A DNA stretch of 64,000 nucleotides from Azolla caroliniana (lineage: Eukaryota; Plantae; Polypodiophyta): the NCBI GenBank assembly GCA_043228905.1, contig JBHGNT010000005.1, positions 3,100,001 through 3,164,000 on the forward strand, read 5' to 3'. The first letter of the stretch is position 1. The number at the start of each line of letters is the position of its first letter. Made by a program: the position numbers and the translations under genes. The notes under the pieces were generated by a model, which saw nothing but the letters and a program-made list of their open reading frames with translations, did not search any database and was not told the DNA's origin. Shown here one piece after another: positions 668-50,080 of the stretch.

Positions 668-3600
668 ATGCTGTATTATTATTGCTTTATGGTGGGACTC
701 CTATGGCTTACAGGTTTCTTTACTTAAAAGCAAACAGATTGATTTCGTAATTTTTGGAATGTCAACTAATTTATGGATTCTTTTGTAGGATTCGACACTA
801 CAAACGTCCTTCACCTTGCTGAAGCAGGAACTTTATGTATTTTCTGATGTCTCTATCTCAATTTATCTTGCATGCGTATGCCAGTGAAATACAAAAACTA
901 TGACCATCTTTTTCCTTTACTAGAAGGAAATTCATTGCTATGGTCAGGGGAAACTTAGCATCACTTTAAAGAATAGAGGAGGCAGCTTCAATGCATGATT
1001 GTTGAAACAAGAATAGCTTATGAATTATTTCACATGTTTAAGTGATACTCGAATGCACAACACTATAGTGACAATATATGCAAACAAAGATAGTATTTGA
1101 TTAAGTATTAACCACCATGTAGCTTGTGGAAGGATAGTACATGAAGACAAAAATATTTCATGGATTAGTGCATATGGAATCTCCTGTTGCTGTGAAATCC
1201 CTCTCGCAGTGATTAAACCTTAATCACGCACTTAATAGTCCAATGCACTTGTAGGAGGTGACTCTTGATAGACTCTCACATGCAAGGGTGATACATCTCT
1301 TTCTGGAATAGAAGAAGCTGAATAAAATGGAATTTTATTTTTGAAATGAGAGGTATGCATCGTGTGATTATAGGGAGGGTGCTGATATCAATTTATTTAA
1401 GGCACTGTTAAATTCAACTGTAGAAAGAAAGGTCTAACATCTATTAGATCAAGGGTCGAGTCTGTCTAAGATTGAATGTGGATGAGATATTCAAAAATTC
1501 TCATTTGCCTCATGGACTGTCATACTTTAATTGCACGAAATGTTCATAGTGTATTATTGGTGTTTTCAAGTTTATATTTTTCTGAAAGAAGAGTGTTTTA
1601 TTATGTGAGTCATGGTCCCAACTTCCAATAGGGAGAACTGAAAGAGAGATTCTAATTATTGTATGAATGGTGAGATAAATGGTTGTGAGCCACTACTCTT
1701 ACCAGGCCCTCAAGAGTATTTCTAATATAAATGACTCAATTTATGGTCCTAGAAAATGCGAGAGTAGTGCATTTCTTCATCCACTGGCTGTGTGAATCAA
1801 AAGGGAATTTGCATTTGGAACTTGTATTTGCTTTCCCTCTTATTAGGAATATACAACATTTAATGAAGATGCTATGACAGAAGTTCTCCTGTGGTCACTG
1901 ATTATAGCTCTTTCTACCATAAATATCAAGAGGATTTGACTTTTGAGAGAGATGTCTTCCTACATCCATGAATCAGTGAAACCTCAATAAGTTGAATATG
2001 GAGATCAACTTTAATATTTGAGACTGATTCTTGAGCATAAAGCTCATCAATCCTAATTCGTTGTTTTGTTTTTCAATTGCTGGTTTACTTTATAATATTT
2101 CCATGCAATAAGGCCAAAAAAAGGAATTTGATAAACATCAGCAACATATGAATGAATTAGATTATAACTTCAAGCCTTCTAGGCTTTTTCGTCATTTCCA
2201 TTAATTTTCAGAGTAGAGCTGGTCAAGTGGAACTAACACTGAATTTGGTTTTGTTGCTTGCATATACAAGCTTATGAATGCTCTCGATTTAGCAAACAAA
2301 CATCCGTGATTGCATTAGACTCTTTCTCTGTACAGTTCTTTGCAGTTACTGATTGTTCTGATCAGTGCTTGAACTGCAAGCCTTATTTGTTAGATGTTCC
2401 ACCATTTACCCTGGAGTCACCAGTTTCTTATGTACAATTTACTTGCACATGGATGAGAGATGCAGTGGTCGTAAATAAAATTAATGGTGATTGTGAATAT
2501 TCTGGTACTTTTGTTCCAAATCAGTACTATACGTACAATATAACTGCAAAACTCAATGGTCAGGCTTTCTCCAGTCAAATCAAAATTGTCTTCATCTCAG
2601 GTATTGATTTCATACAAATATTTCGTATAAAGTTTTGGTTAGTGGATTGCAGAAATATAAGCTGAATGTTATTGTACATGCATGTCTCATGATGGTTCTC
2701 AAATGCACATAGAACAGTTAGAATGTAGGATTAGTGGTGTTGACTTTAACAAATCTTGTAATATATGAGTTCATGCACTCGTTTATTTCTGGCCAGAGAG
2801 ATTTGTGTTTCATTATAGATATTATAATTTCTTTGTGGGATTATCTCACCAGGGAAAGAATCTATATGCATTTGAAGATGACTCTGGTTCAGAATGTCCA
2901 TCTATTTCACATCTATCATGCATTCCAGGATGTGTCAACATGGTATTATGTTATTAAAGACTGAAAATAAGCAACAGAATAGTCTGAACAGACTTTGCTA
3001 AACTAATCATTCTGGTTGACCCTCTCTTCTAGAAATTTCCTTTATATAAAAACATAGATGTGTCCTGTTAGACTACTCTCAAAAGATTTCAAGGGTATTT
3101 TTGAGAGAGGGAATGTAGATAGATCATGCTATACCACAGCATATAATGGTGACAGAACATGGATCAAGCTTGATAGACTCCCATGAACCTTGTATATTTT
3201 AAAAGGCTATTTGGTAGGATATCCACTTAAGAAAATAACAAAAGTTAGCAGTACTTGTTCTTCTTCATGCCCAGAAAGTTTTTGGGAGCCTGTGCTAAAA
3301 TTTCAATGCTTTCCCTACGATTAAATTCATAGCATTGTCATGTAACTATTTTCAGAATTGTTTAAGTTTATCTCTAGAGGAACAGAAGATATTTTCACAA
3401 TGCATTATACATCAGAACTGAACTAATTAATCAATTACTTGATAATTTTGAATGATATAACAGGTCCATTGTCTGTAGAAGATTGTGGTCCTCTAGAATG
3501 GTCACCATATTCCCCCAGATCACTGATAGCTGGGAAGACTGCCAATTTCACAGTGGCATTAAGAGATCATGTAGGATCTATAAAGAACACAACAACGGTT

Positions 3601-6600
3601 GAAGTAAATGACTCTGAGAGGATGATGTTTGCTGATGCTTTCACAGTGAGTTTTAAGAATGTAACCAGAAATTTAACATCAGGCTTTAACATTCCCGATG
3701 GATATATGTGGGTTTCTTTTACTCCTGTGACGTGTGGATCTTGGAGAGCTAATGTTGGTGTATCACATTGGGGTTTGGATTATTCATTCAAGGCATTTCA
3801 AGGTTCACCTTTTGATATGACTATTAAACCAGGTCGATTATCTTGATGCCTTGCAATTGGATCTCTTGATTTTTGTTGGAAATGTTTGCAAAATACATTG
3901 CAGTTTCAATCTCATGATAATGATAATAGAGATCATAACTTGGTGCCTAAATATTGTAACCATCATCATCATCATCACCACCACATCAGTAACCACAAGT
4001 ATCGTTTTTCCGTTTTCCATTTTAAGTTTGTATTTCCAAACCATCATTATGAACAATAATAATGCTAAATGCTGCGATTATTTTTCTCAATATTGCATTA
4101 GTCCATATTTCTGTTAAGATATGCATTAAACATTCCAGTAAGGATATAATCTGCGGCATTTTGCATGCTGCATTCATATGTATATATTTAAGATTGTGTA
4201 TGCTAATGTGAATCTGAAAAGAGAATGTCAAATATACATGTAGTACAGCGGCAAGACAGTCATTTTCTCGTTCATAAATAATTGTATACTCATCATGTTC
4301 ATATATTTATATAGATTTACGTGTTTCGCTTTTGATCATGGATTTAGAAGATAACCATTGTATGCAATCAATACCAGATGTCTGAAGATATATAGTGTTT
4401 GTGCTGTTCAGGTGATGTTTCTGTAAATAATTCAAAAGGGTATTTGGTGAACAAAGTTAATAACTTGAGTGCTGGAGAATTTTTTACCCTGAAGGTGCTT
4501 TTGGTGGATGCGTATAAAAATAACATCACTGCAACCACAGCACAGATAGCTACTTATCCATTCCATGTTTTCTCAACAGCTTTGACTGCCAGGATTGCTC
4601 CTTGTAAAATTTTGAACTATACTGATGAGGCTGGATATTTAGTTATTAATGTTACAAATGAAATTATTGGTTCATATAGGCTGCATGTTGAACTCAATAA
4701 CAGTACTCGAATAGTTGGATCATCTTTTCTTTACTCAGTGAACTCATCAGGTACTCATTTCTTTCTGGTTTAATAACGTTTATAGGGTATTTTGAAGGAA
4801 TCACCTATAAAAAAGCTGTATCCATTTCTCCTTGAAGATATTGTTGGTATAAATATATTTTCTATAATTGTGTAATATAAGTTTCGTCTTTTGTGTTACT
4901 CTAATTAGTATCCGTTCATGTATGCTCACATAATTACTAGAAGTAATGCTTAATCAAAACTGACAATTACGATTTATAGAGATGATGATATATGATATGT
5001 CTTAATGTAACTAACATGACCCATGGGACCAATAATCATTATAAAGCAGTGGGGATTTTAAAATGCTTGACCAAAACTGAGATAGTAAAAGATGAAATGA
5101 AAAACTAAACCTGTTCCTAATTTCATTGTTTAGATTTTCCACTAGTTTGGTCCTTTGGTTCAGTAGATGATCAACAACCAGTCCTAGTTTCACGGGTGAT
5201 GGTTCTGTCCTTTGTTAGGAGTTCTGTAGTACAATCTTGTAGGAAGATGTCCTAATATGGAAGACATTCCAAAGTGACATCTTTTTCTTGTTCTGGTATC
5301 TTCAGGCAGCATAGGTCACACATGTTTCTGCTCAATATTCAGCCAACCCCTAGTTTCCATTTTCAATGCTCGTGAGTGTGTGCGCATTAGTGTGATCACA
5401 CATCTCGCTTGCTTCAGCATGAGCGTTGGCATCTGCCTGCACCCCTCTGTAATTTTCCAAATTTTGAGTATTAATGTGGCCTCACTTGCACTCACAATGT
5501 GTGGACTTTCAATGTATCTGAGTAAACATGACTCATGTTCTCATGTCCATTTCTTTTCTTGTGTGCACATCCAGATATTCTTTAATATGCCATCTTGCAA
5601 TTTATTTATTGATTTCTTAGACTCAGCTGGAGGAAAGAAATTGCTTTTCTGGTCTGTGATAAGCATCCAAATTTCCATCCACCCTTGGGGAAGTGATTTT
5701 GAGGCATTTTGAATACGTACCTATAAATTTTTTGAAGCACCTAAAATTCTATTGGACTTCTTCCAGTTTCACAAAGCATTACAATCTGGAAACTTAAAAG
5801 CAAATTAAATTGTACCAAGAAACTAGGTAGCTACCTTATGGAACTAGGCTGAAATCAAGATACAATGATACAGGGATGATGTGTACAAGTAATCGTGCCC
5901 AAAGGATAAAAAATAGATGGGTATGATGCACAAAACAAAAATATATCTGCGAGAGATTGTAGATTCTCAGCAGGTCATCCCATGTACACTCTCATAGAAT
6001 GATGTCATATGAGATTGATGATCTCTTTAATAAATTGTCTAGAGGTTCTTGCTCAAACTGGGGCAATAATATCATGTATCCTCTGATGCAGGCAATGTCT
6101 CTATGTGTTGATCTGGCCAATGAACTGCTCAAGTCAAGCAATATCCCTGCACAAGGTGGTGATTGTGCTTGCTCTTAGTTCTGTTGGCATGATCTTCTAA
6201 TTTATAGGAATCAGCAACGTTTCAATTTGAGTCAAAACTGACCATGAAATAGTGATTAACAGTGACAGTATCATTAGATTGGAAAATGGTTTGGTTTGGA
6301 TTGTATCAGTTCCGTGGTTTACAGTTTATCAAGCTTGAAACTGTGGCTTAAATTATCTTAAACTGCAAATGTGTGCTGGTTTAATGGCTTATAGGATCAT
6401 TTTTATATTATAAATTAATATAAAAATCATAAACCCTAATAACGCTTAAAGTAAACAACAATGATTTAAATGCTTTGGTCTTAAACAGTTTAGGTTTGAT
6501 GGATTCTTTCTTAAACAGTCCAGTTTAGGTTTGAGGATGTCTTCAATAATTTGTGGTTTTGAGGTCTAAACTTTAGCTTTCAAAATTTTAAATGGTTTGA

Positions 6601-9600
6601 GTTTGAGACTGCCAAATCCATTGGAACCGAATACAACCTCCGATTGACTGCTTCTAAAGAAGTTTGACATCTGTCTTTGCAGAAGCTTTGCTGGCTGCAA
6701 GAGGTTTCTCCGTTTATCTTTACTGATTGAGTTTTGTCTAAGTCTGCAATGATGGTCCAAAACTGGTCACTTAGTCTCAACTTCATACTTATCTTAACTC
6801 CATAAAGAAAGAAATATATTAATGTCTTTTAAGAGTCCAAAATGGCCTATAAGGCCAAATTAGAGAAATATAATGGCCTATATGCTTTCTTCCTTCAATG
6901 TTCAAAATCTATGTATCTGTTCGAAAACTGATAGAACAGCAGTAAATTATTTACATGGACTGCAAGCCATGATAAAGTTCAGGCCGGGTTTCATAAAAAA
7001 TCGTAGTGACCATTGATTGATTCACGAAAATTGCATCCATGTGGATCTCAATACTGTGCCAATTGCCTATGAAACTTAAGTTGTCTGTAAGCAAGGTAGT
7101 TGTGCTATGTAACTACGTTGTCATCACATTGCAGTGATATAAGGACCATGACTATAAGTAATGTTAACATCCTTTGGAGGACGAACTCAACCTATGGGAC
7201 AAATTGATACATCCTTATTAATTAGATTCCAATTTGGATGGAATATAGTGAAAGTCTTGGTTGATGTAAATTATTCTAAAAGTTGGATTCAACATTATTA
7301 CATCCCTGGGGAAATATGTGGTGTTTTCTTTGGTTTGTGGAATGTTTGGATGTTTGTGTTAGCTGAGAGCTCTGTAAAATGCCCATTTTCCTTGGCTTCA
7401 TGTTGGGGTTAAGAGAGGCTCTTTACTTGAATGAAAGAGACTGATGATGTTACTTGATTTCAGGAGAAGTGTACATTGAAACATGTACAGGAATGTGGAA
7501 TAAGACAACATTTATAGCAGGACAAGTTGCCAAGATGACTGTGGTAATGAGAGACAAATATGGTAATGAAGTGACACCATTACCCGAACGTAACAACTTT
7601 AGAGAGTTTAAAGTGATAAGGTATGATAGCCCATTGAACAAATCCTATGAGTTTACCACAACCCTCCCAGTTCCTCCAACTCAACGTGAAATGGTGAGTT
7701 TTATTCCTACTAAAGCTGGGAGATTCTCTTATCATGTTGAAAGTGCAGATCGCCGGTCAATCAAAAGTACCCCAGGAAATATCACCATCTTACCTGGTAC
7801 CCTTCTTGATATTAATTAAATATATCTTAATAAAATTTAATATAACTTTTTTAAATATTTGTCTCATTCATACAATCTATTGTAATAAAATTGGATGTAA
7901 TGTTTTTATAAATTTTCATAAAATCTATCTTTATAAAATTGAACATAATGTAAATTTGTTATGTGCAGTCTTTGATTTTGCTATTTTATGCATAAAGTTT
8001 TACCATTTTGATGGTTGCTAATTTACAGTTCATAACTGCTTAAAGCTTAAAACACTCCAACTCACTCTAACCATCTAAACCACTTGCCATAACAAAATAT
8101 GCGTCTGTAACTAAAATATGCCATGCGATATTTTCAAAGCATTGATGAAACCCTAGCACTTACAAATACATTAAATGTAGTTCCATTTGACATAGCTGCC
8201 AAAGGGTGCACTGTGTGGTGTAAGTGCTTCTAGAGACATGCTTTTTATTGTCTTTTACATGAGCTCGGTTGGAACCGCATGCCACAATTTGCAGTGCCAA
8301 GGCTTAAGACAATAATTTATAGGGTCTGAATGTCAATGTTCATTCCACAATAATTTCTAGTGAGAAAGTTTAAATATTCGACGGATGTTTTTGGTGAATC
8401 CCGAGAGTATAGACAATCATATGTAACCACACGCACATAGCCATTACATTAATGAATAACATCAACGAAATCAATTAGGCACACTAATATCTGGAATTTG
8501 AATTTGAATTCAAATGCAATTTGTGTGCATTCTTCAACGTATAATATAAGTCATGAGAAATATGATGACTTGTTAGACGGACATGCTAATTTAAGTGTCA
8601 TATTCAAATGTCTACCGAGAAGGGTGAGCACATTGTGCAAGTATTATTTTCACATAGATAGGTTTTACTGCAAAATAACAAACCCCCTTCTTAGGAAGGA
8701 CGATAGGCCTTGGCCCCATGAACCAGATACGCAATTTGTCGTGCACATAGGCCCTGGCCCCAAAGACCACAATCTCACCACCCGTGTGATCGATAGACAT
8801 ATAAAGGCCATTATATCCTGCCATCGCAGGTGCTTCCCTCGCTTTGGAGACCTCTCCTTTCTGGATTCACCTATGCGAGAGATCTTTCAAATACAAAAAT
8901 TACAATATATCTGGCTTGAGAATCTTACATGTACCAATAACAAGATTCTTTAGTCTCTTCTTATCTTATTTACTTGTTTTACATAGTAACATTATTTTAT
9001 TTTGATTTGTTGTTCTCAAAGACAGGACAACACTTAAGTTGTGACCTCTGGTTTGGTCTTATTGGCCATTTTAATCTCTTAAAAAAATTAAATATATCTG
9101 ACTTGAGAATCTTACATGTGCCGATAACAAGATTCTTTAGTTTGTTTTTATCTTATTTACTCATTTTATTTAGTAACATTTATTTATTTGATTTGTTGTT
9201 CTCCAAGACGAGACAACACATAAGATGTTTGGTCTTATTATATTAACCATGAATGTGTTGGCTGCAATAATGGTTTTGGTTTGGATTCACTTGAGCTTCC
9301 AAACGTTTTGTGTTTATCCACCTTGACACGAGATAACTACTACAATATCATGTATATTGAGAGGGATTCCCTTAATAATGTGATTGACAAAAATTAACAT
9401 AATCAAATAGTAAAATCCAAATAAAAGCTAGGAATGTTATGTGTTCTCACCAACCCAGCCATATATGGTTGAGTGATAGATATTGAACACATTCCTAAGC
9501 ATTGCATTGCATGAAGGAAAATGCTGCTGAAAATAGTCTTCTAATATGCAAAATAGCCTAAGAATACAACAGACTTATCAATTGTTTCTTTTTTTGGATG

Positions 9601-12600
9601 CTTAAAATAGTCTTGGAAGGCGCAAAATAACCTAAGAATACAAGAAGCTAATCATATGGTTATTTATCTCACAATTTTCTGACAAACATTACATGCCATT
9701 ACTTTAAAAGCATGTCTCACTCACTATATAGGCGTTCATGACAAATATAAGACAATGATACATAAGATGAATACAGAAGAACATATCTCACCAAATAAAT
9801 AGGTGGTGAAACAATCAATTGCAAAAGAGACTTTTAAGGAAGTCAAAATGGTCATGGTTTTGTATCATTATAATTAAGAAAAACCTAACATGTTGATGTC
9901 TTTCCAGGTCCACTATTTATCCCACGTTGTAAAGCATCTTGGAGGAATGGAAGCAGCCAATTCTTTATTGGGAAACAAGCGGTTATGGTAGTGAAACTGG
10001 TGGATGAGTTCGGGAACAATGTGAATTTCTCGACTGTGCCGCCGCTTTTTAACCTTACGTTTTCATCCTCGAATGGAACAACTTTCTCACAACCTTATTC
10101 TCAAGAGGTGCATAAAGAAACAGGGAATGCACTCATCACCGTCAATGTTACTATTGGCCAAGGATTCTGGCCATGCCATGTCTTTTACAACTCAGAAGAA
10201 GTACCAGGCTCTATTGTCAATTTCGTAGTTTATTCAGGTGCGTCAAAATTCTTTCAACACTCTTACAAGATTTCTCTTTTTATGGATTAGGTATCACTCA
10301 TACCTCAGGAAGCAACATCCGCAGTATTCAAACCATAATGTAAATGAAAATACGCAGAAAAAGGTTTACTGCAAACTGATCATAATGATTACTCTATAAA
10401 CAAAGTTATCGAATCAAAAATCTATGTTGAGACCTTCATTTCTTGTTAGGATGCTAAGCAGTCGACTTAAGATAGTGGAGCTCTAAATGAAATTTTTAAT
10501 CTACTCCAAGTATTGTCATCCAAGATTTCTCAAGCCTCTTCATTACTAATCTAAGGTTTATGTACAATTCCTTAGGGTTTTTGACCCAATCTAAAAAGAA
10601 TTACTGACCACTTGTTATCAGGTGCTATTCTTTCTTGCTATGTCCGTGTGGCATGGAAAAACAATGTGAGCATATTTGAGGCAGGACAACCAATGTATCA
10701 AGTTGTGGATGTAATGGATGCTTCTATGAATCCGCTGGATCTAAAGAGTGTAAACTATACTGTAAGCTTTAAAATATCTGAAAGTATTGGCTCACGCTGC
10801 TACCCTATGGGTTACACAGTGATGGAACAATTAGGTCGCCTAGAGATGTCTCAAGTATGCTTACATGTGGGAGAATTTTCTGGTATTATTCTCATAAATG
10901 GCACTTTTATCAGCAATTTTATCTCATATCAAATAATCCCAGGTACCACATTGTATTTATAAGTCACACAACTCTCATTCATATTTGTATTACCTTAGAC
11001 TGGAGGATTGATCAATGAATGAGTCTGCATTTGTATTGTTCACTTTGTTCATGCGTCATCCAAGAAAGATGGCATTTTGTATATAATTTATTCCAGCAAG
11101 AATTCTATGCATGCCAGATATGTTATGAACAATGCTTGACATTTCTAATCTGTCTTGACATTTGCATGCAGGACCTGTATATCTTCCATATTGTTTAGGC
11201 ACCTTGAAAAATGGGATGACCAACTACACTGTAGGAGTAGATATTATTTTTGATGTTCTTCTCAATGATGCATACAATAACACTGTAAGCAAAGCCAATG
11301 GAAGGATGGGTCAAGCTGAGCTGACCTATGTGTTTACTTTTGTTGCAACTAAAAAAGCAGTTTCGTCACTGAACTTCACAAGCTTATCGGAAAGAGGTTC
11401 TGGCCATGAAACTATTAGCTTCACCTTCATAACTGCAGGTTCCTATATTTTACATGTCAATGGATACCAACAAGCAGCAAGCATATATGTTGCTGATATG
11501 AAAGGCCAACTAAATCTAAAAGAAATTAGCTCTAGACAAGTGGAAATAAGGGGTTCACCTTCCACATTCAAAGTTATTCCAGGTATAAATAATTCTATTA
11601 GGTTCTGAATATATATTGTTCCTGCATCAACAAATTGTTCTAGTAATTGTTCAAAGGTGGTGAAATTTTTGGGCACTTCAGTTCTGGCATTTGTAAAATC
11701 TACTCTTTCACATTGTGGTCAAGTAATTGTTTTGCCATGGCACATTTTTGAAGCATGAGTCACATATGAGAAGTAAAATGATATATAAAAGTAGAAAATG
11801 TATAAGTTTTCATGTTTAGGAGAGGCCGACATGCCTTAGGAGAGCGAATGAGAGATAACTTCTTCAAGCATTGTCTCATCTTTGAGAACAACAAATCTAA
11901 AATATATATATAAAGAAAAGTATAGTAAATTTGTCTAAGCTACAAGATAATTGATAAGAATCTAACTCTTGTAGAGTTGAGTATGTGGAAGCGTAGTGCG
12001 TGTGTGAGCAAGAGAAGGAATCAGAGAGAATAACCAGAAAATAAGAAAATACACAGTATGGGTTTTTTGGAAAAAAACACAATAGGGGTATGGCAACTTA
12101 TGCACTGAAGAGAAAAATATATTAATTAACTAAAGATGATGAAGTAAACACAATGGGCCAAGCGGGTTTTATATACAAGTCCTCAAGGGATTGCCACATT
12201 AAATGTGTTGGTGGAATGTAATCAAGATATCCACTTGAGGACGATTCTGTCATAAGAATATCTGATATCTTTGACCACATTCATGCTTGACGTTTACAAT
12301 AAAGTGTGTTCAGACACTTTTTCACACATTTTGCTTTTCTTCATAAGCACATGTTCACACAAGTTGAGCTTGATTCTCAACAATAATCTTGTTAGCTACA
12401 AACTTTAACATTCTGAACTTACATGGACTGAAAGTTCTATTTTTGAAAAATCTCCAACATGGGAAAGGTCTTTGAAGTGATAGAAGCACCTTTAGTGTCA
12501 GGTGGTAATGGCCTTGGATTTTAAATAACAAGGGTGGCAGAGCCATGATCCAGGTTGACATTGTGTACATGCAGTTGGGGACAAATTTCTATTGACTGAT

Positions 12601-33600: not shown

Positions 33601-36600
33601 CTTCAACAACTTCACATATGTCTCTCGATATCTAGCAAGAACAATTACAAGCATCAATGATCATTATATGCCATTACCTTCTGGAGTGTACCAAAGCCTT
33701 GTCCAAAGAGGCAATAGTATCTCCCTCTTATTTTGTAAAAAACAGTTGGATGGAAAATCTGGTCATATTTTTGCTGTGATTCCACATCCTGATGGTACAA
33801 TTGGAAATCTTATTCTTCCAAAGCTTTCCCTGCATATCTGCCTCTGTCAATCTCCAACCCTTGTGAAGAGATCCTGAGCTGCCTTATAATACTATGGAGC
33901 ACATGAAGACATGTGTATCCATATAACACGGCCTGATTATCAATCCATTATGCAACAAGTGTAAAGAAAGAAGAAAGAAAGAAAGATATATTAACGTCTT
34001 TTAAGAGGCCAAAATGGCCAATAAGACCAAACAAGAGATTACATCTTAAGTGTTGTCTGGTGTTTGAGAACAACAAATCAAAAAAATAAGAGGGGTCATT
34101 ATAGTGGGCCATCATCCTACAAAGAGGTTTATGGGGCTGATTCACGGTGTTTTATTGTTCAACATAATAATATCATATCCTTTTGGATCACTCTCTTCTA
34201 TTTAATTTTGGTTATGTCCAACTGAGAACAATCCTAGGTATATTGGAATGGGGATAGTGCATTTATATTTGTGTCCTTTCATTTGAACCATTCTTTCATT
34301 TCAGCATACAAAGAATCAGTATTTCCTTGTTCTGACTGCTGTTTTGATGACGTAAGTTCCAAACTTTGCTTTGGGAGCGTTGAGATCCTAATTGGGTTGC
34401 CCGTAATTTCTTATAGCATGAGACAGAGGTGATGGTGCTAAAGAAAGTTTTGATAGTTCTCTGTCAATGAGGTTGTGCAGTTGTATTGTTGTCCTTCAAC
34501 AACTTCACATATGTCTCTCGATATCTAGCAAGAACAATTACAAGCATCAATGATCATTATATGCCATTACCTTCTGGAGTGTACCAAAGCCTTGTCCAAA
34601 GAGGCAATAGTATCTCCCTCTTATTTTGTAAAAAACAGTTGGATGGAAAATCTGGTCATATTTTTGCTGTGATTCCACATCCTGATGGTACAATTGGAAA
34701 TCTTATTCTTCCAAAGCTTTCCCTGCATATCTGCCTCTGTCAATCTCCAACCCTTGTGAAGAGATCCTGAGCTGCCTTATAATACTATGGAGCACATGAA
34801 GACATGTGTATCCATATAACACGGCCTGATTATCAATCCATTATGCAACAAGTGTAAAGAAAGAAGAAAGAAAGAAAGATATATTAACGTCTTTTAAGAG
34901 GCCAAAATGGCCAATAAGACCAAACAAGAGATTACATCTTAAGTGTTGTCTGGTGTTTGAGAACAACAAATCAAAAAAATAAGAGGGGTCATTATAGTGG
35001 GCCATCATCCTACAAAGAGGTTTATGGGGCTGATTCACGGTGTTTTATTGTTCAACATAATAATATCATATCCTTTTGGATCACTCTCTTCTATTTAATT
35101 TTGGTTATGTCCAACTGAGAACAATCCTAGGTATATTGGAATGGGGATAGTGCATTTATATTTGTGTCCTTTCATTTGAACCATTCTTTCATTTCAGCAT
35201 ACAAAGAATCAGTATTTCCTTGTTCTGACTGCTGTTTTGATGACGTAAGTTCCAAACTTTGCTTTGGGAGCGTTGAGATCCTAATTGGGTTGCCCGTAAT
35301 TTCTTATAGCATGAGACAGAGGTGATGGTGCTAAAGAAAGTTTTGATAGTTCTCTGTCAATGAGGTTGTGCAGTTGTATTGTTGTCCTTCAACAACTTCA
35401 CATATGTCTCTCGATATCTAGCAAGAACAATTACAAGCATCAATGATCATTATATGCCATTACCTTCTGGAGTGTACCAAAGCCTTGTCCAAAGAGGCAA
35501 TAGTATCTCCCTCTTATTTTGTAAAAAACAGTTGGATGGAAAATCTGGTCATATTTTTGCTGTGATTCCACATCCTGATGGTACAATTGGAAATCTTATT
35601 CTTCCAAAGCTTTCCCTGCATATCTGCCTCTGTCAATCTCCAACCCTTGTGAAGAGATCCTGAGCTGCCTTATAATACTATGGAGCACATGAAGACATGT
35701 GTATCCATATAACACGGCCTGATTATCAATCCATTATGCAACAAGTGTAAAGAAAGAAGAAAGAAAGAAAGATATATTAACGTCTTTTAAGAGGCCAAAA
35801 TGGCCAATAAGACCAAACAAGAGATTACATCTTAAGTGTTGTCTGGTGTTTGAGAACAACAAATCAAAAAAATAAGAGGGGTCATTATAGTGGGCCATCA
35901 TCCTACAAAGAGGTTTATGGGGCTGATTCACGGTGTTTTATTGTTCAACATAATAATATCATATCCTTTTGGATCACTCTCTTCTATTTAATTTTGGTTA
36001 TGTCCAACTGAGAACAATCCTAGGTATATTGGAATGGGGATAGTGCATTTATATTTGTGTCCTTTCATTTGAACCATTCTTTCATTTCAGCATACAAAGA
36101 ATCAGTATTTCCTTGTTCTGACTGCTGTTTTGATGACGTAAGTTCCAAACTTTGCTTTGGGAGCGTTGAGATCCTAATTGGGTTGCCCGTAATTTCTTAT
36201 AGCATGAGACAGAGGTGATGGTGCTAAAGAAAGTTTTGATAGTTCTCTGTCAATGAGGTTGTGCAGTTGTATTGTTGTCCTTCAACAACTTCACATATGT
36301 CTCTCGATATCTAGCAAGAACAATTACAAGCATCAATGATCATTATATGCCATTACCTTCTGGAGTGTACCAAAGCCTTGTCCAAAGAGGCAATAGTATC
36401 TCCCTCTTATTTTGTAAAAAACAGTTGGATGGAAAATCTGGTCATATTTTTGCTGTGATTCCACATCCTGATGGTACAATTGGAAATCTTATTCTTCCAA
36501 AGCTTTCCCTGCATATCTGCCTCTGTCAATCTCCAACCCTTGTGAAGAGATCCTGAGCTGCCTTATAATACTATGGAGCACATGAAGACATGTGTATCCA

Positions 36601-39600
36601 TATAACACGGCCTGATTATCAATCCATTATGCAACAAGTGTAAAGAAAGAAGAAAGAAAGAAAGATATATTAACGTCTTTTAAGAGGCCAAAATGGCCAA
36701 TAAGACCAAACAAGAGATTACATCTTAAGTGTTGTCTGGTGTTTGAGAACAACAAATCAAAAAAATAAGAGGGGTCATTATAGTGGGCCATCATCCTACA
36801 AAGAGGTTTATGGGGCTGATTCACGGTGTTTTATTGTTCAACATAATAATATCATATCCTTTTGGATCACTCTCTTCTATTTAATTTTGGTTATGTCCAA
36901 CTGAGAACAATCCTAGGTATATTGGAATGGGGATAGTGCATTTATATTTGTGTCCTTTCATTTGAACCATTCTTTCATTTCAGCATACAAAGAATCAGTA
37001 TTTCCTTGTTCTGACTGCTGTTTTGATGACGTAAGTTCCAAACTTTGCTTTGGGAGCGTTGAGATCCTAATTGGGTTGCCCGTAATTTCTTATAGCATGA
37101 GACAGAGGTGATGGTGCTAAAGAAAGTTTTGATAGTTCTCTGTCAATGAGGTTGTGCAGTTGTATTGTTGTCCTTCAACAACTTCACATATGTCTCTCGA
37201 TATCTAGCAAGAACAATTACAAGCATCAATGATCATTATATGCCATTACCTTCTGGAGTGTACCAAAGCCTTGTCCAAAGAGGCAATAGTATCTCCCTCT
37301 TATTTTGTAAAAAACAGTTGGATGGAAAATCTGGTCATATTTTTGCTGTGATTCCACATCCTGATGGTACAATTGGAAATCTTATTCTTCCAAAGCTTTC
37401 CCTGCATATCTGCCTCTGTCAATCTCCAACCCTTGTGAAGAGATCCTGAGCTGCCTTATAATACTATGGAGCACATGAAGACATGTGTATCCATATAACA
37501 CGGCCTGATTATCAATCCATTATGCAACAAGTGTAAAGAAAGAAGAAAGAAAGAAAGATATATTAACGTCTTTTAAGAGGCCAAAATGGCCAATAAGACC
37601 AAACAAGAGATTACATCTTAAGTGTTGTCTGGTGTTTGAGAACAACAAATCAAAAAAATAAGAGGGGTCATTATAGTGGGCCATCATCCTACAAAGAGGT
37701 TTATGGGGCTGATTCACGGTGTTTTATTGTTCAACATAATAATATCATATCCTTTTGGATCACTCTCTTCTATTTAATTTTGGTTATGTCCAACTGAGAA
37801 CAATCCTAGGTATATTGGAATGGGGATAGTGCATTTATATTTGTGTCCTTTCATTTGAACCATTCTTTCATTTCAGCATACAAAGAATCAGTATTTCCTT
37901 GTTCTGACTGCTGTTTTGATGACGTAAGTTCCAAACTTTGCTTTGGGAGCTCCCAAATCCATTGCATACAACTCACTGTTCATAAGAATGACTCATTGCT
38001 ATTTGGGCTGCAACCATCTCAGCTTGGATGACCTCATGGGACACTAATGCGTTGGTCCTTATCATGGAAGCAATCATCAAGATAAAAGGTTTGGTCCTCA
38101 AGTGCCACTTTGTAGAGAAGATTGGTGCAACAAGTATATCAAACAACCACAATTTTGTTCATTGTTCATGGTTTTTGCTACTATATATGTGCACACTGTC
38201 TTTCAAGGGCAGCAAAGGCTGCATATCCTAAGGAAAGTCAAACATAAGCAGTGTCCCATAGGGAGAACCAAGGTCCTATGAATGTTACTTTTAGGTATGT
38301 ATAGGAATTGTGTATACGTAAATGTTGCTTTGCTCTAAAATAGAATTCAACATTTTAAGATGTAATCTCTAGTGTGATCCCATAAGCCATTTTGGCCTCA
38401 TAAAATACATTAATTCATCTCTCCTTCTATCTTCTTTCTGCCAATAACAGTTCTAGTTCTTTTCTTGTTAGCCATGCTTGAGTGGTGTTAAACACTGACC
38501 CTTCTGTTTTATCAAGGCTTACAAAGAAGTCTTTCTTTTTTCCAAAATAACTTTAGATATATTTATAGTTGCTTCGGAGAGTCTGAAATCAACTCACTAT
38601 CATGATTTGTAATATTTGTATGGTTGACCCCTGATAGCATGCTCCTGAAACACCCAAATCTCTCTTCACAATTAGATACCGCATCTATATATCGACCAGA
38701 TTACCTCTTCTTTTCAAGGAGTTCATTACTATCTCCTTAAGACACGTTAGTGGTTCAAGGACTTGTGATGTATAGGGTAATAATCTATATAGTTTCTAGT
38801 TTGAGTGGTTTGAAGAAATTCTCAACCCCCAATTATTAAGTAACATCTGAATCTTAATGAACTACAATATTATATAGCTAACTGTTGGATCTTGTATCAA
38901 TTTGGAATCATGTCTTGGAGATGAAAGTCAGCTTAGGAGAGAGATTGTGGATAGAAATGTGAGTTTCCTATACATAGAAGGAGAAAAGATACATAAAGAG
39001 AAATCATGTTTGACAGAATTAGAAGCTAGAATGAGCTAGTTGGGTTGTATATAACACTATTTTAACTCAGTACACATGCAGGATATGCATATCTACTTAC
39101 TATGACCATCTATTGGTACATGATGACACCTTTTGTGGGGTTCACGTTTATTCCTTTTGCCAAGTCTCTTTAATTTTAATCAATGTTGATTTTTCAATAA
39201 AATAATTAGGTGTCTATAAAATTATTTTGTTCATGTAGGATTGGAAGTAGTATGGTTATATCATATTGGAATCAATTATCCATATTAACGGTGAATGTGC
39301 ATGTCGACTATGGAACACTCTATATGGGAGCACACGACTCCAAAGTATGGATGCCAGTTTTGGAGGCAAGGAATACAACAGATAATATCACTTTCATAGG
39401 CTCTCTAAATGTGGTGAATGAAGCTTTGAGAATGCTCCTTTATATCGGGTATGCAATTTTCAATTTCTTTTAGATCTAAGAATACTATGTTCCCAAAAAA
39501 ATGTACTTTCAAAAAAATCATAAACATCTTATTTGTGATACAACCTAAGTTTTAAGACTAACCAAATTCAAAACAAAGTGGAAATTAATAAATTTATCTA

Positions 39601-42600
39601 ATAGGTTTTTACTTCAATTAATAGTAAGAAGCTAATTTATGATAAGCACGAAAGTAAGATAGCTAAATTCAGCCATTTCTGTTATGATATATTCTTATTT
39701 ACATACATTTACATGTTTTACATATCATCTCTACTATGATATATTCTTATTTATCTATCATTAAATGAATTTATATCTTAGGCCTAGAAATTTCAATGGT
39801 AGAGATTTGCTCACAATTGTGGTGATAGATGCGTACAACAATAATGCAAATGCAAGCATAGATCTAATCATAAAACCAGTCAATAATCCACCATACATTA
39901 TTGCTCCATATAAAGTGTTGCTTGATCGAAGTGGTGGAATGAAATATGGTTTCTACACAAACAAGAGTATAAAAAGTTTTAAGGAAGGCAACGAGTTCAT
40001 AACAGTTGGTGATCCAGACGAACTGGATCCAAGAGGTAAAGTTGATTAGAAAAACACAATTCAATACCCCTAACTTTTTGAAAATCCCTAAAATTTTAAA
40101 AAATGTCAATATATACATCTGGATGTTGTACAAAACTGTAAGATCCAAAAATTTAAAGAATACCCAGCGTAGTACCAAATGTGTTCGGGTAACATATAAA
40201 AACTGATGATGTATGTTGATGTTTTTCCCACTTTTAGTTAGATAACCTAAATTTTGCACACCTTTTTTTATGCTTTTTTCTATTTTCATAGACTTTGGGG
40301 AGGAACTACAACTTCAAGTCCTCGTAGGAGTTGATATTGGTAATGTTTATATGACATTGCCTACAATCGCTCTTCAAGACCTTAAAGTATTTAGTGGAAG
40401 TACTGGCATGTGGGAATCATATAAACCTACTACACAAGAAGTTTATGATGTCATGACAGTGCATGCCCAAGGAATACTATTTTACTTAAATGTCAACGAC
40501 TCCAATAATGCTATAAAGACGATTACATATGACGTAAGTATTTATGCCTCTTATAGTTTGTGTATTGTAAACTTAAGTTTAGACATGAGATCAACTCTTT
40601 TATTTAAGTTTAAAATGGATCTTAATTCTAATCATAACTCCTACAAAATGAAAATTTAAATTTGTAAATAACGTCGAATCATGATTATCTTCAAGATGTA
40701 ACAAGAATATATCATGAACTCTTGTTCTGATCATGACTAGGTTCGTAATGCACTTCAAGCAAGAGTGAGTTATATTCTTATTACATGCACTTAAAGCAAG
40801 AGTGAGTTATATTCTTATTACATGCATTTGAAGCAAGAGTGATTTTGGACCATGATTATTTTCTTACTACATGAAATAAGGATCAAAGTAAGAGTGAGTT
40901 GATTTTTACTTACAGTTGATGAAAGCATATGAATGGAAACACTATTATAACTAACATGTAGCTAAAATGACCACAGCTAAGTAGTTTTTTTTATAGCTAA
41001 TTTTTAGTGGGAAAATCTTAAAGATACATATCATTTATTATGGGGATGGAAATATTACCATTTATGGTTCACATTTTAGCTGGTCTTTATTTGAGATCAC
41101 ATTCTAATAATCCTTAAAATTGCCAAAATATGTAAATTACATGCAGCTTTTTGCATAGCTAATATGTCAAGGACATAGCCAATTGTTCCCATTCCCATGC
41201 TTTCACAAGTTTTAGCAAATAGTAATATGTATGCTTGTCAATTCCACAACAAGCACAACCATTCTCCATGTTAGAGACTCAAGAGAATCGTTTCGATATC
41301 ATGGTGATGGCGTCAATATTGGATATTAAGCATCTATAAACTAATCTTTTGACAATACATTTCATGAAAAGCGAGAAAATGTTGTTTTTAAGTAAACAAC
41401 TCTGTGTAGATAAATTATTGACAAATTGTTATCAATGTAGGGAAATAATGCAGCAACGCTTCATCTTATAGTGAATGATCGAGGATCATGGGGTTGCTCA
41501 AATGGTTGCAAAAATGAGGATATGTCAATACCACTCATAGCTGAAGCAAAGATTAGTTTGATCTTTTCAACACATGACCATGAAGGTAAGAAATGCTTTC
41601 AAGTGAAGTTGATAACAAAAAATTTGTATTGGTCGATAACGGTTTTTTTCCTCAATTGATTATTTTTTTATAACAAAAAAATGAGGGACTTCCTGAAATA
41701 TACCTTGATGGGTTAAATTTTGCATGGACATCCTGAAAATTGTATCCTCCATCTCCTTATTTGTTACATGCATGTAAAGATCCCTCAGTTCTGAAAAATT
41801 ATCAAAACACCCCTGTGTTGTAGTAATTGTTCGAAGATGGGTATTTTGCTAAGGCAAATTTGGAAGCAGAAGGTTATTTCCGAAATACTAAAAAACTTAA
41901 TGGCATTTTGGTGTTTTCTTCTGTTTAAAAATGATGCATTATCAATCATGCACATTGCATGAAACGTGTAGGCCAATCATGTAATTTTATTGCCTTTGTC
42001 CTTAATTTTATTTTTGTTCAATTCCAAATAAGAAGTTACTTGTGATTATAACAATTAATATATTGCATTTTCTAGGTCCTTCAAGAGGAAAAATTATGGT
42101 GGCCATGGTGTTAGTAATAGTGTCAATCATTGGCATATATGTAATATTCATTATGGTACCTTGCTATATAGCAAAGCTTGACCAAAAGGAATATAGTAAC
42201 AAGGATATTCGAGATAAGGTTGACTTAAATTTTTTCCTAAAAGAGGAAGAAAATCTACAGAATACGAAGGTAGTTTTTATCATTTCAATTGTCATTGGTT
42301 TATGGCTAATCATTTTAATTATAAAAGTATGGTTTTTAGGTTCATAATAGAAAAGGAGTTGTATTATTTATGAATATAATTTTGTTGTTGGAACATTTTA
42401 GGTGTATAACACTTTGTGGGTCCCTTCTGTAAGTGGAGATGGAGAGACTAGTGTAATCAATCCTATTTGCATCCAACGATGGGATCATGAATTGAAAAGA
42501 ATGTATGCATTTGTTTCTATTATTTTTTAGCTTTGACATGTTTATGTATCCTAATGTTCTCATCCCTCGCTGTCATTGATTTTAAAACGTGTCCATTTGT

Positions 42601-42641
42601 GTAGGCTATCTCTAGCTAAAGAGAAGATGTCAACACGCTAA
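668..42641 (+). CDS. GEX2: GEX2-like gamete adhesion membrane protein with an expanded filamin/Ig-like repeat array (~2,450 aa, ~28 coding exons)
   Basis: Predicted exons: 668-713 (MLYYYCFMVGLLWLT, signal peptide); 789-827 or 789-836. Repeat exons: 2271-2600, 3464-3832, 4412-4750, 7464-7796, 9908-10237, 10622-10942, 11172-11582, 16505-16840, 17210-17527, 17640-17975, 18061-18387, 18685-19005, 20836-21171, 24841-25164, 26255-26587, 26811-27191, 27674-27985. Then 28145-28266, 29178-29398, 39239-39448, 39782-40035, 40292-40533, 41441-41585, 42076-42269, 42402-42502, 42605-42641 (TAA). Phases join in frame. Repeats show the filamin-type consensus C-x3-W..F.AG..D.YGN..G.Y.L.V..I.GSPF. The C-terminal part has P.A.xD..IDVLSND and NFNGxD..VNNPP cadherin-like motifs, plus VNDRGSWGCSNGC..SIPLIAEAKISLI, which resembles the plant GEX2 juxtamembrane motif, followed by one TM helix. 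The two terminal exons at each end are the least certain. Confidence 0.85.
5230..6200 (-). mobile_element. Highly decayed RTE-X-like LINE ORF2 C-terminal fragment (divergent subfamily)
   Basis: The minus strand gives ITLMRTHSRALKMETRGW and MCDLCCLKIPEQEKDVTLEC, variants of the R(T/S)xSHxLxIExGR..CxxC..ExH..C motif. Boundaries are approximate. Confidence 0.45.
6804..6868 (-). mobile_element. Short 3'-end copy of the RTE-X-like LINE
   Basis: AAAGAAAGAAATATATTAATGTCTTTTAAGAGTCCAAAATGGCCTATAAG is the reverse complement of the family 3' end. Confidence 0.7.
6935..7308 (+). pseudogene. Probable decayed (pseudo)exon of a filamin-like repeat inside a GEX2 intron
   Basis: Across frameshifts it reads LFTWTASHDKVQAGFHK / IVVT / IDSRKLHPCGSQYCANCL* ... 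WNIVKVLVDVNYSKSWIQHYYIPG. This has the W..x.AG start and IPG end typical of the repeats, and a repeat-like length (~370 nt). The expected donor is CCTG|GG rather than CCTG|GT. Confidence 0.5.
8600..9240 (+). mobile_element. 5'-truncated LINE 3' portion followed by a partial duplication of its 3' end
   Basis: Homologous to 23280-23670 (IKAIISCH..CFPRFG..LENLTC). The ATATCTG.CTTGAGAATCTTACATGT block occurs at ~8907 and again at ~9094. Confidence 0.7.
12530..13110 (-). mobile_element. Decayed RTE-X-like LINE fragment (zinc-finger region)
   Basis: ORF 12787-12975 reads EIDTGRYISKPMEQQIFQLCYHDVESEHYVCC..MEYEDQR. Confidence 0.7.
13305..13418 (+). mobile_element. Short 3'-end copy of the RTE-X-like LINE
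   Basis: GATGTAATCTCTTGTTTGGTCTTATAGGCCATTTTGGCCTCTTAAAAGGCGTTAATATATCTTTCTTTCT. Confidence 0.75.
13574..13734. repeat. 80-bp tandem duplication (2 copies)
   Basis: TTTCTTACTCAAGGCG..CAACAAAGGTATT starts at 13574 and at 13654 with few mismatches. Confidence 0.9.
13830..15830 (-). mobile_element. Internally deleted RTE-X-like LINE (APE remnant joined to the zinc finger and 3' end) with a duplicated ~400-bp 3' end
   Basis: The minus strand gives GDILLIGDFNARTKDE (~15750-15795), GGASKVNYLMG..GHAYL (APE C-terminal motifs) and QLPTSSHQLEIEASKY..EERICQSCH (~14900-15000). The 3' region is present twice (13830-14230 and 14236-14640). No RT core was seen between the APE and the zinc finger. Confidence 0.75.
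17489..17559. repeat. 39-bp-period duplication across a GEX2 exon/intron junction
   Basis: GTATTTCAGGGT(C/T)CCCCTTTCTTTTCACTATT at 17489 (exon) and 17528 (intron start). Confidence 0.85.
19900..20350 (-). mobile_element. Decayed RTE-X-like LINE fragment
   Basis: EEQMHHQDVKSEEHYVCY in ORF 20055-20249. Nucleotide similarity to 12600-13110 and to the 893-bp unit. Confidence 0.65.
21845..22040 (-). mobile_element. Decayed LINE 3' end
   Basis: AAGAAAGAAAGATCTATTAAGAGGCCAAAATGGCCTATAAGATCAAACAAGA. Confidence 0.65.
22356..23669 (+). mobile_element. 5'-truncated, internally deleted RTE-X-like non-LTR retrotransposon (RT C-terminal part, zinc finger, 3' hairpin, TTTC tail)
   Basis: GVK*GCPLSPTL, YADDVV, LSVNKSKTKILL and VESFKYLG RT motifs, then RTSSHQLEIEVGRYTRMPLEERICQ..EHYVCH. 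It ends TTAATATATCTTTCTTTCT. Possible 7-bp TSD TCTATCT at 22352-22358 and 23667-23673. Confidence 0.85.
24470..24720 (-). mobile_element. Decayed RTE-X-like LINE fragment
   Basis: IRQLRNSVYQLEIEIGKYAHKSKEEWMCQ in ORF 24489-24674. Confidence 0.65.
25625..25725 (-). mobile_element. Short LINE 3'-end copy
   Basis: GAAAGAAACATATATTGATGTCTTTGAAGAGACTCAAATGGCCTACAAGACAGAACAAAAGATTACATCT. Confidence 0.65.
28545..29012. repeat. 236-bp tandem duplication (2 copies) in a GEX2 intron
   Basis: TCATGGACGTGC.TGTAGTTTA starts at 28545 and 28781. The near-identical ORF translations 28567-28803 and 28803-29018 reflect this. Confidence 0.9.
29914..37950. repeat. Tandem array of exactly 9 x 893-bp units in the GEX2 intron 29399-39238
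   Basis: The unit starts GTTGAGATCCTAATTGGG at 29914, 30807 and so on, and ends CTTTGGGAGC at 37950 (9 x 893 = 8037). ORF translations are identical in all nine units and no differences were noticed by eye. Confidence 0.97.
30392..30517 (-). mobile_element. Young ~120-bp LINE 3'-end (SINE-like) insertion nested in the 893-bp unit, repeated in all nine units
   Basis: GAAAGAAGAAAGAAAGAAAGATATATTAACGTCTTTTAAGAGGCCAAAATGGCC..CAAATCAAAA interrupts host CAAGTGTAAA|GAGGGGTCATTATAGTGGGCC. That host sequence is uninterrupted in the related copies at ~13030-13075 and ~20280-20315. Confidence 0.8.
38355..38440 (+). mobile_element. Decayed LINE 3' end
   Basis: TTAAGATGTAATCTCT..CATAAGCCATTTTGGCCTCATAAAATACATTAATTCATCTCTCCTTCT. 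Confidence 0.6.
40748..40842. repeat. 37-bp minisatellite (~2.5 copies)
   Basis: ATGCACTT.AAGCAAGAGTGAGTTATATTCTTATTAC at 40748, 40785 and 40822. Confidence 0.85.
42076..42269 (+). other. GEX2 transmembrane exon
   Basis: IMVAMVLVIVSIIGIYVIFIMVPCYIA hydrophobic run followed by a charged cytoplasmic tail. AG at 42074-75, GT at 42270. Confidence 0.8.
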
Positions 42642-42886
42642 GTAGAGATCTGCCTTCTGTAAGTGGAGATGGAGAGACTAGTGTAATCAATCCTATTTGC
42701 ATCCAACGATGGGATCATGAATTGAAAAGAATGTATGCATTTGTTTCTATTATTTTTTAGCTTTGACATGTTTATGTATCCTAATGTTCTCATCCCTCGC
42801 TGTCATTGATTTTAAAACGTGTCCATTTGTGTAGGCTATCTCTAGCTAAAGAGAAGATGTCAACACGCTAAGTAGAGATCTGCCTT
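42423..42886. repeat. 230-bp tandem duplication covering the predicted last intron and stop codon of GEX2
   Basis: CCTTCTGTAAGTGGAGATGG starts at 42423 and 42653. The copies look identical, with a CCTT microhomology at the junction. Confidence 0.92.
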
Positions 42887-47247: not shown

Positions 47248-47274
47248 GGATCCATGCGTCAGAGGGTCGTTTAG

Positions 47275-47275
<1 letters not shown>

Positions 47276-47308
<33 letters not shown>
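47276..47308. repeat. (TG)n microsatellite in the PPR 5' region
   Basis: About 16 perfect TG units. Confidence 0.95.
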
Positions 47309-47310
<2 letters not shown>

Positions 47311-47384
47311 ATTCATATATCAATGGCCATTACTTAGAGAGAGGCGTGCGTACCAATAGTTTTCTTTGCAAACTGAACTAAGGG

Positions 47385-49059: not shown

Positions 49060-50080
49060 GTGAGTTGCTCTTTTAAATTGGCACCCTTTATTTTACTCAT
49101 TCATGCATGCAATCCATGAATTCTTGCTCCACAAGCTCCTCTCTATTTGTTCTCTCTATATGGGATAAAAAAAGGTTTATACTCGTAACTCTATACAACT
49201 AGAATAAACAATTAATATGCAAAATATCTTCACTTATAAATGTACACATGTATTATGTCGAGTATATGCATGCATGTGTTTACAAACATATCCAACACAC
49301 GAATTTACACAAACGTCATATGTGTATTATGTGGGCTATATGTATGTACGTTGACTTACACTTTATTTGCATGTTTGGGGTATGTGTAATATAATTTGTG
49401 CCTAAACAATCTTATTGATGCATATCAAGGCTTCCCATATACTGGGAAACATCCTTGTTTTGAGGCTTCATTTTTTGACCAATTGGTAATAGAAACTTGA
49501 AACACTTCATACACAATACTACAAGCATATTGTATGGAAAGTGTCCATGTTTCGAGGATGAATGTTAAGAGTCAAAAGACATCATACAATTTATAAACTT
49601 GATATGACATGTAGTGAAACATATGGACCACTAAGACATCATATAACAATTCGTAAAATAGATATGATATATGGTGAAACTTAAGCGCCAGCCCAAAATG
49701 TAATCTTAATAACATGGTGGAATCATATTAAATTGAATGTAACGAAACAACAATAATAAGGTTGATGTGTTCATATGTATTCATGGGGTCCTCATAGATC
49801 ATAAATTCTGCACATATTTCCACACAATGATGTGAATTTGGTCATAGGAAATAGGGGCTTGGAGTAGTATGTCATGGTGCTTTGGTTCACCCTACACCAT
49901 ATTGTTCATCCGTATGATGGGTTAGATTGTAGAGTGTAATTTAGTCATGCATGTGCTATATGTAGAAAACCTATCTTGAACTCTTTGATGAGGTGTGCTC
50001 ATCTAATAACCATTTATTTGTTTTTTTTTTTAAATACATCCCATTTTGCAGGCATTGTAAGGAGAGGTACTATAGTGACA

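Follow-up and report, generated by a model that had tools for sequence, protein, structure and literature searches.

The window, a 64,000-nt stretch of Azolla caroliniana DNA, carries on its forward strand one spliced gene for a FUS1/GEX2-family type I membrane protein with an ectodomain of about 20 domains. The best overall explanation, to which we give a probability of about 0.55, is that the product is a rod used in sperm-egg attachment. The gene call and the family assignment are considerably firmer, and we hold both with high confidence. The coding sequence of 7,329 nt (2,442 aa) is distributed over 27 exons from the ATG at 668 to the TAA at 42639-42641. All 26 introns are bounded by GT-AG, the phases agree throughout and the exons are free of stops, in agreement with the intact spliced frame of ~2,450 aa given in a preliminary description of this DNA.

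668..42641, + strand: complete gene with 27 coding exons; the product is a FUS1/GEX2-family type I membrane protein (gene model, colinearity with Ceratopteris KP509_36G059100, RNA joints)
668..713, + strand: exon 1, start codon and 15-aa leader, hydrophobic by eye, putative signal peptide only
2271..2600, + strand: exon 2, predicted N-terminal six-Cys beta-sandwich cap (profile comparison, predicted fold, fern alignment)
3464..11582, + strand: exons 3-8 (3464-3832, 4412-4750, 7464-7796, 9908-10237, 10622-10942, 11172-11582), filamin/GEX2-type Ig repeats 1-6 (Pfam, repeat tree)
16505..19005, + strand: exons 9-13 (16505-16840, 17210-17527, 17640-17975, 18061-18387, 18685-19005), Ig repeats 7-11 (Pfam, repeat tree, joints in RNA contigs)
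20836..27985, + strand: exons 14-18 (20836-21171, 24841-25164, 26255-26587, 26811-27191, 27674-27985), Ig repeats 12-16, positional counterparts of the first five Ig domains in angiosperm GEX2 (Pfam, RNA, tree)
28145..29398, + strand: exons 19-20 (28145-28266, 29178-29398), Big_9 bacterial-Ig-like domain (Ceratopteris match, PF17963)
29914..37950, no strand: nine-copy perfect 893-bp tandem array, noncoding, within the 9,840-bp intron 20
39239..41585, + strand: exons 21-24 (39239-39448, 39782-40035, 40292-40533, 41441-41585), two cadherin-like beta-sandwich domains and the juxtamembrane two-Cys motif of GEX2
42076..42269, + strand: exon 25, single transmembrane (TM) helix and first part of the cytoplasmic tail (hydropathy)
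42402..42641, + strand: exons 26-27 (42402-42502, 42605-42641), cytoplasmic tail, stop at 42639-42641

Gene model and transcripts

Each of the 16 Ig repeats is encoded by one phase-1 exon. Exons 2-18 amount to 1,919 codons, so the ~1,920 codons assigned earlier to 17 filamin/Ig repeats stand, but the number of units resolves into 16 repeats and one cap. Exons 19-27 provide 509 codons, matching the C-terminal region of ~500 aa proposed at the outset, and the expected single membrane helix corresponds to the sole TM-grade hydrophobic stretch, in exon 25 (19-residue Kyte-Doolittle mean of 3.04; runner-up, 1.57). A start of exon 2 at 2394 was abandoned for 2271 because the upstream frame is conserved in Ceratopteris and Adiantum. 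The 893-bp array was also rejected as the origin of the extra repeats: it contains no Ig exon, and pieces of it are common to other intronic repeats.

RNA contigs about 97% identical to the window join exons 8-15. A 4,778-nt contig present in two studies crosses exons 9-14 and has loose ends that correspond to exons 8 and 15; its length fits a stretch running from the 3′ end of exon 5 through exon 20. RNA and genome differ at 27 synonymous and 13 non-synonymous sites (29 of the 40 at third positions), none of which creates a stop. As the contigs are about 2.5-3% different from the window, they derive from another strain, species or homeologue. No joint among exons 1-5 or 20-27 was seen in the RNA contigs. 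The joined exons 8-15, together with exons 3-24 (all but exon 10), which follow the same order along Ceratopteris KP509_36G059100 with 33-53% identity, argue for the single spliced gene that had been called.

The ends of the contigs bear on a different reading, in which most of the output of the locus is shorter (an ectodomain of about 2,049 aa that ends in intron 20 and lacks the TM helix, or a product that starts or is spliced within exon 5), the full rod being minor or the model a fusion of two units. Contigs of different studies do end alike: in three runs they break off with ~50 nt of exon 5 still to come, and in two they lack the last nucleotide of exon 20. Read-through into the 9.8-kb, array-bearing intron 20 would immediately encounter a stop. 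However, allele bubbles can also produce contig ends. Along the Ceratopteris protein, exons 20 and 21 are contiguous (residues 2008 and 2013), and exons 2-5 and 21-27 keep open frames and a conserved order. We consider this reading improbable.

Repeat array and GEX2 family membership

Pfam was run exon by exon, and Ceratopteris KAH7281701.1 served as the whole-chain proxy in searches, trees and folds. Ig_GEX2_N (PF23616) scored above the cut-off in 11 exons and below it in exons 3, 7 and 16, while exons 17-18 match Filamin and one exon exceeds the Filamin (PF00630) cut-off. Taken one at a time, the C-terminal exons matched nothing in Pfam, being too short. The repeat profile matches filamins and Chlamydomonas FUS1 (PDB 9qs0, E 2e-5), which shares the linear Ig-like rod and single TM helix but has seven Ig domains and a partner, MAR1, restricted to green algae. 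A cytosolic filamin or gelation factor was rejected as the identity of the product, as the filamin actin-binding domain is absent from every exon scanned with Pfam and a TM helix is present. The repeats are strongly diverged from one another, as described before (mean pairwise identity of 24%, maximum of 38%). In contrast, the richness in N-x-S/T sites proved ordinary: exons 2-24 carry 62 sites, a density of about 2.6 per 100 aa, and other GEX2 ectodomains have 1.7-2.6.

Exons 19-24 align to residues 1898-2288 of the Ceratopteris protein; exons 19-20 are 43-46% identical to residues 1898-2008, a stretch to which PF17963 assigns 40 bits. The C-terminal 400 aa of the Ceratopteris proxy matches Amborella GEX2 over its full length at 31% identity (E about 5e-44), and bacterial Big_9 proteins reach about 1e-11 at best. 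Exon 22 clusters with fern proteins, the C-terminus falls into Big_9/cadherin clusters of the ESM Atlas, and the VYNxxW[IV]P motif of the cytoplasmic tail (exons 26-27) recurs in Ceratopteris, Selaginella and Diphasiastrum. Foldseek with a seven-domain model returned generic multi-Ig matches alone (TM-scores ≤0.22). On strict orthology to angiosperm GEX2, a tree built with the Ceratopteris proxy gave a divided answer: ferns group with angiosperms (support 79/76), but the alternative grouping with lycophytes retains an AU p of 0.22.

Tandem filamin/invasin-type Ig domains, a Big_9 plus cadherin-like region and a C-terminal TM helix with a short tail are all present. With PF23616 in 11 exons and the C-terminal match of the proxy to Amborella GEX2, sequence comparison supports membership in the FUS1/GEX2 family, as originally proposed. 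The literature found describes a family of 7-8 Ig domains, compared with about 20 here; this count describes the members studied and does not bound the family. Angiosperm GEX2 (Amborella XP_020523491.1, 1,116 aa) shares the Ig_GEX2_N/filamin repeats, the Big_9 and cadherin-like domains, the juxtamembrane two-Cys motif, one TM helix and a similar sequon density, but it has 8 Ig domains, lacks the six-Cys cap and carries another cytoplasmic tail. As Arabidopsis GEX2 likewise consists of eight Ig domains (PMC13589550), the estimate of about a dozen extra domains was correct.

Conservation of the long form in ferns

The closest relatives are ferns, consistent with the swimming-sperm host assumed at first. 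Ceratopteris richardii KP509_36G059100 (KAH7281701.1, UniRef A0A8T2QEU6, 2,408 aa), an uncharacterised database entry, shares the domain order from cap to tail, exon-by-exon colinearity at 26-53% identity and the tail motif. Its model holds a mere fragment at repeat 8 (exon 10), which Adiantum keeps. In a quick repeat tree, 13 of the 16 repeats fall into starred groups with the Ceratopteris or Adiantum repeat of the same position, two more pair by position at 88-92, and the last has its same-position repeat as the nearest row. Exon 16 groups with the third angiosperm repeat and exon 18 with the fifth; exons 14-15 were matched to angiosperm domains by position alone. In the few ferns sampled, each repeat of the array thus has its conserved counterpart at the same position, which makes the long array an old and stable fern trait and not a recent expansion.

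A recent, lineage-specific expansion for species recognition would suit a long array of duplicable symmetric exons, and repeat number does vary between plant groups. However, the repeats are 24% alike within the gene compared with 33-53% to their Ceratopteris counterparts, they show no sign of turnover or homogenisation, and the differences to near relatives are mostly synonymous. The positional repeat tree largely refutes this idea, which we regard as very unlikely. Species recognition through the array is not supported by repeats that are conserved by position; only the cap diverges faster.

Ceratopteris KP509_01G014500 and Adiantum L7F22_017205 form positional groups of their own, indicating at least one more long paralogue in ferns, so the copy studied here need not be the gamete one. 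Long GEX2-like models also occur in Selaginella and Marchantia paleacea (XP_024527230.1, EFJ32173.1, Mapa_008562). By the repeat profile they have 11-13 and at least 7-8 repeats, respectively, which is more than in angiosperms, and a Cys-rich N-terminal region, but their repeats pair by position with the fern ones only near the membrane, and several models lack the C-terminus. The literature search found no paper describing the long fern, Selaginella or M. paleacea forms, and nothing on the Ceratopteris locus, the run accessions or the fern egg envelope. The long form is not peculiar to this DNA, since a colinear protein is already in NCBI/UniProt; this comes near to the case in which the preliminary description would give up its novelty.

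The cap and the possible role of the rod

The 68 aa encoded by the 3′ part of exon 2 had no match in Pfam, and exon 2 aligned to the repeat profile with an hhalign probability of 1%; by sequence it is therefore not a filamin/GEX2 repeat. The AlphaFold model (pLDDT 61) has seven strands, with Ig-like and cadherin domains as the nearest folds (Z 6-8), and the ESM Atlas offers PKD/Ig look-alikes under 0.9. This is the most divergent domain, with 24-37% identity among ferns. As modelled, the cap is a distinct six-Cys beta-sandwich that diverges faster than the repeats. Neither hhalign nor BLAST matched it significantly to the Selaginella and Marchantia N-termini, and shuffle tests gave weak signals (z of 1.8 and 2.8).

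The product would be an N-glycosylated rod at the cell surface that crosses the membrane once and is built of about 20 beta-sandwich domains. Its eight membrane-proximal domains (exons 14-24) would form the GEX2 core; the Arabidopsis core binds GEX3, and attachment depends on it. The eleven additional repeats, in exons 3-13, would act as a fixed-length stalk. At an assumed 4 nm or so per domain, the fully extended rod would measure roughly 70-80 nm, versus about 30 nm for eight domains. Symmetric phase-1 exons may have been duplicated long ago to build the array, which has since stayed fixed. The fast-evolving cap is a candidate head that would make first contact with the partner cell, by analogy with FUS1, in which the N-terminal domain is disulfide-bonded and the membrane-distal half binds MAR1; no egg-side partner of plant GEX2 is known (PMC13601591). 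As Arabidopsis GEX2 tolerates the loss of up to four N-terminal domains (PMC13589550), the idea that the tip carries a binding head extrapolates from FUS1.

The likeliest use of the rod would be sperm-egg attachment before HAP2 fusion. A sperm-specific role is shown for angiosperm GEX2, and GEX2 is expressed in the sperm of Marchantia (PMC6290024) and cycads (PMC12849711); by analogy we lean towards gamete adhesion for the fern gene, the role of which is putative. A possible but less probable reading is a GEX2 paralogue outside fertilisation, which would serve vegetative cells as a long spacer or tether at the plasma membrane, sperm-egg attachment falling to another member. Several long paralogues exist in ferns and Selaginella, and matching transcript contigs (depth 12-19) occur in 15 runs of five studies. 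These libraries carry no tissue labels, so the contigs could reflect vegetative expression; a strictly sperm-specific gene would yield them only if the libraries were reproductive. However, all FUS1/GEX2 proteins studied act in gametes, and homologue searches did not find a short canonical fern GEX2. Moss, hornwort and gymnosperm GEX2 were likewise not found among the 8,000 candidates scored, a search too insensitive to be evidence of absence.

More speculatively, long GEX2 with a Cys-rich head could be the sperm-egg adhesin of swimming-sperm plants and the eight-domain angiosperm GEX2 a shortened derivative, having lost head and stalk with pollen-tube delivery; the fern cap might then bind in trans and discriminate between species. 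As distant ferns keep the 20-domain form by position, land plants have evidently differed widely in the length of the ectodomain. The value of the locus lies in this fern-wide architecture and not in a single copy, an unnamed relative being already in public databases, and Ceratopteris could serve to test whether rod length or the cap matters for the attachment of swimming sperm. The introns of the Azolla gene are compact, its span being 42 kb versus 430 kb in Ceratopteris.

Gene model and transcripts

Six-frame scans of the window revealed successive open stretches of 105-135 codons on the plus strand. Splice sites were set from the sequence and exon 2 and the 3′ end were then refined by homology, giving 27 exons (668-42641) with GT-AG introns throughout, consistent phases and no stop, which together comprise 7,329 nt encoding 2,442 aa. 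Exons 2-18, each in phase 1 at both ends, sum to 1,919 codons and exons 19-27 to 509, and the sole TM-grade hydrophobic run in the hydropathy profile is exon 25. These values agree with the preliminary description of an intact spliced ORF of ~2,450 aa (~1,920 plus ~500 codons) with one TM helix. In intron 1, an AG is followed by a short open stretch (790-845), which could be an extra phase-1 mini-exon lengthening the leader. An exact 230-bp tandem duplication (42423-42886) takes in most of exon 26 together with intron 26 and exon 27; its second copy lies beyond the stop codon and represents a recent duplication or an assembly slip.

Part of 16400-19100 is contained in 15 runs from five studies, the RNA status of which is a guess. 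Four runs analyzed on 16400-21300 covered exons only, all five internal joints being GT-AG skips, and at their loose ends these contigs matched the 3′ end of exon 8 on one side and the 5′ end of exon 15 on the other. Two studies yielded a single contig of 4,778 nt, as long as expected for a stretch running from the final 50 nt of exon 5 through exon 20. Divergence of the contigs from the window is ~2.5-3% and mostly silent (27 of 40 differences), which indicates that they originate in a close relative or homeologue and confirms the reading frame. The gene is real. Read-through into intron 20 would meet an immediate stop and yield a TM-less form of ~2,049 aa; that the locus yields mainly short products is quite improbable.

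By length arithmetic, the contig ends coincide between studies at 7747, 2 nt before an in-frame AG within exon 5, and at 29398, one nucleotide before exon 20 ends. Two sequence types, X1/X12 and X3/X4, are present among the 16400-21300 contigs, both ~2.5-3% off the window; they cut across organism labels and represent other strains, species or homeologues.

Domain architecture

Pfam Ig_GEX2_N was matched above the cut-off by exons 4-6 and 8-15 and below it by exons 3, 7 and 16, while exons 17-18 matched Filamin. In a PDB search, the profile of the 16 repeats matched filamins and Chlamydomonas FUS1. Exon 2 did not match the repeat profile; all six of its cysteines are strictly conserved across three fern sequences, and a low-confidence model showed a seven-strand sandwich whose best matches were generic Ig-like and cadherin folds (Z 6-8). 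Thus, the array consists of one cap and 16 repeats: of the 17 tandem repeats initially proposed, 16 are of the filamin/GEX2 type and the first is a distinct domain. The repeats are, as had been noted, strongly diverged (only 24% identity within the gene), but the reported richness in N-x-S/T sites reduces to a sequon density ordinary for the GEX2 family.

The Ceratopteris counterpart of exons 15-24 was modelled (pLDDT 75, pTM 0.41) and also analyzed with Pfam; its strand pattern is consistent with four repeats plus a Big_9 domain and a further pair of sandwiches. Counting the cap, 16 repeats, Big_9 and two sandwiches, the ectodomain has ~20 domains, in contrast to the 7-8 Ig domains of Arabidopsis GEX2 (10.1101/2021.09.03.458930; PMC13589550). 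The protein is a single-pass Ig rod.

Relatives and age of the array

Searches with the model used its exons one at a time. When the repeat profile was run against 1.84 billion proteins, the top-ranked hit was a protein of 2,408 aa matched in 17 stretches, the uncharacterised Ceratopteris richardii entry KP509_36G059100, which served as the proxy for family placement. Exons 3-24 except exon 10 align to it in order (33-53% identity), as do the tail motif and the last exon; the cap shows 26% identity. The exon 10 counterpart is fragmentary there and present in two Adiantum species. The C-terminal regions of Adiantum and Ceratopteris are 59-68% alike, which sets the host of the window well apart from their family; its compact introns hint at a fern with a small genome.

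In a quick tree of 120 repeats based on few columns, 13 of the 16 window repeats grouped with good support with the fern repeat of the same position, a further two paired by position at 88-92, and the last had its same-position fern repeat as nearest neighbour. This positional grouping, together with the low within-gene identity, argues that the array is old and stable, and the long form is probably fern-wide, not special to the Azolla genome. A recent repeat expansion serving species recognition is highly improbable. A second long GEX2-like paralogue (Ceratopteris KP509_01G014500, Adiantum nelumboides L7F22_017205; public models fragmentary) forms its own positional repeat groups. That the window gene is a paralogue with a non-gamete role is possible but rather unlikely.

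Profile-based repeat counts were 6-13 in Selaginella models, at least 7-8 in Marchantia paleacea and 3-4 in angiosperms, for which counting by position gave five. Of the angiosperm repeats, the third pairs with exon 16 and the fifth with exon 18, which makes angiosperm GEX2 the counterpart of the membrane-proximal eight domains. The Ceratopteris C-terminal 400 aa matched Amborella GEX2 over the full length (31%, E ~5e-44), far above bacterial Big_9 proteins, and exon 22 alone grouped with fern proteins, bearing out the GEX2-type C-terminus proposed earlier. With Ceratopteris as proxy, ferns and angiosperms grouped at 79/76, an alternative grouping not being rejected. Judged from sequence, GEX2-family membership is solid.

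A literature search, with most subscription papers outside its reach, found no description of long GEX2 in seed-free plants; reviews give seven Ig domains (PMC12069490; PMC8777248). The long sequence type is already public in databases, but unnamed.

Proposed function and neighbouring features

Arabidopsis GEX2 still rescues after loss of up to four N-terminal Ig domains and binds GEX3 until seven are deleted (PMC13589550); this puts the core close to the membrane and leaves the distal repeats as a spacer. The membrane-proximal eight domains of the fern protein may thus do the same job as GEX2. FUS1 binds its partner through the membrane-distal half (PMC13601591). Divergence is greatest in the cap (24-37% vs 33-67% for the next three repeats), which would fit a recognition head or relaxed constraint alike. 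GEX2 is expressed in sperm of Marchantia (PMC6290024) and cycads (PMC12849711). Together, these data make an adhesin with a long stalk that attaches gametes the favoured reading, to which we assign a probability of roughly 0.55.

Other features of the window are as follows.

29914-37950, intron 20: perfect 893-bp tandem array, nine copies (eight full units, zero differences)
22463-23270 (intron 14) and 14414-15574 (intron 8), opposite strands: decayed LINE-like reverse transcriptase/endonuclease remnants, recognized by eye in translations
45370-47316, minus strand: single-exon pentatricopeptide-repeat gene, 648 aa (Pfam PPR_2, E 2e-68)
50050-51800, continuing downstream, plus strand: spliced FAD-dependent oxidoreductase gene (DAO family Rossmann motif)
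58699-59664, plus strand: exon with MOSC N-terminal domain
59051-59199: GCATAT microsatellite, following the MOSC N-terminal domain

The zero divergence of the 893-bp array could mean that it was amplified very recently or that it is an artefact of assembly, and the array has segments in common with further repeat-derived stretches of introns, among them 22886-23257 and 14633-14833. The pentatricopeptide-repeat gene is convergent with the GEX2-like gene.
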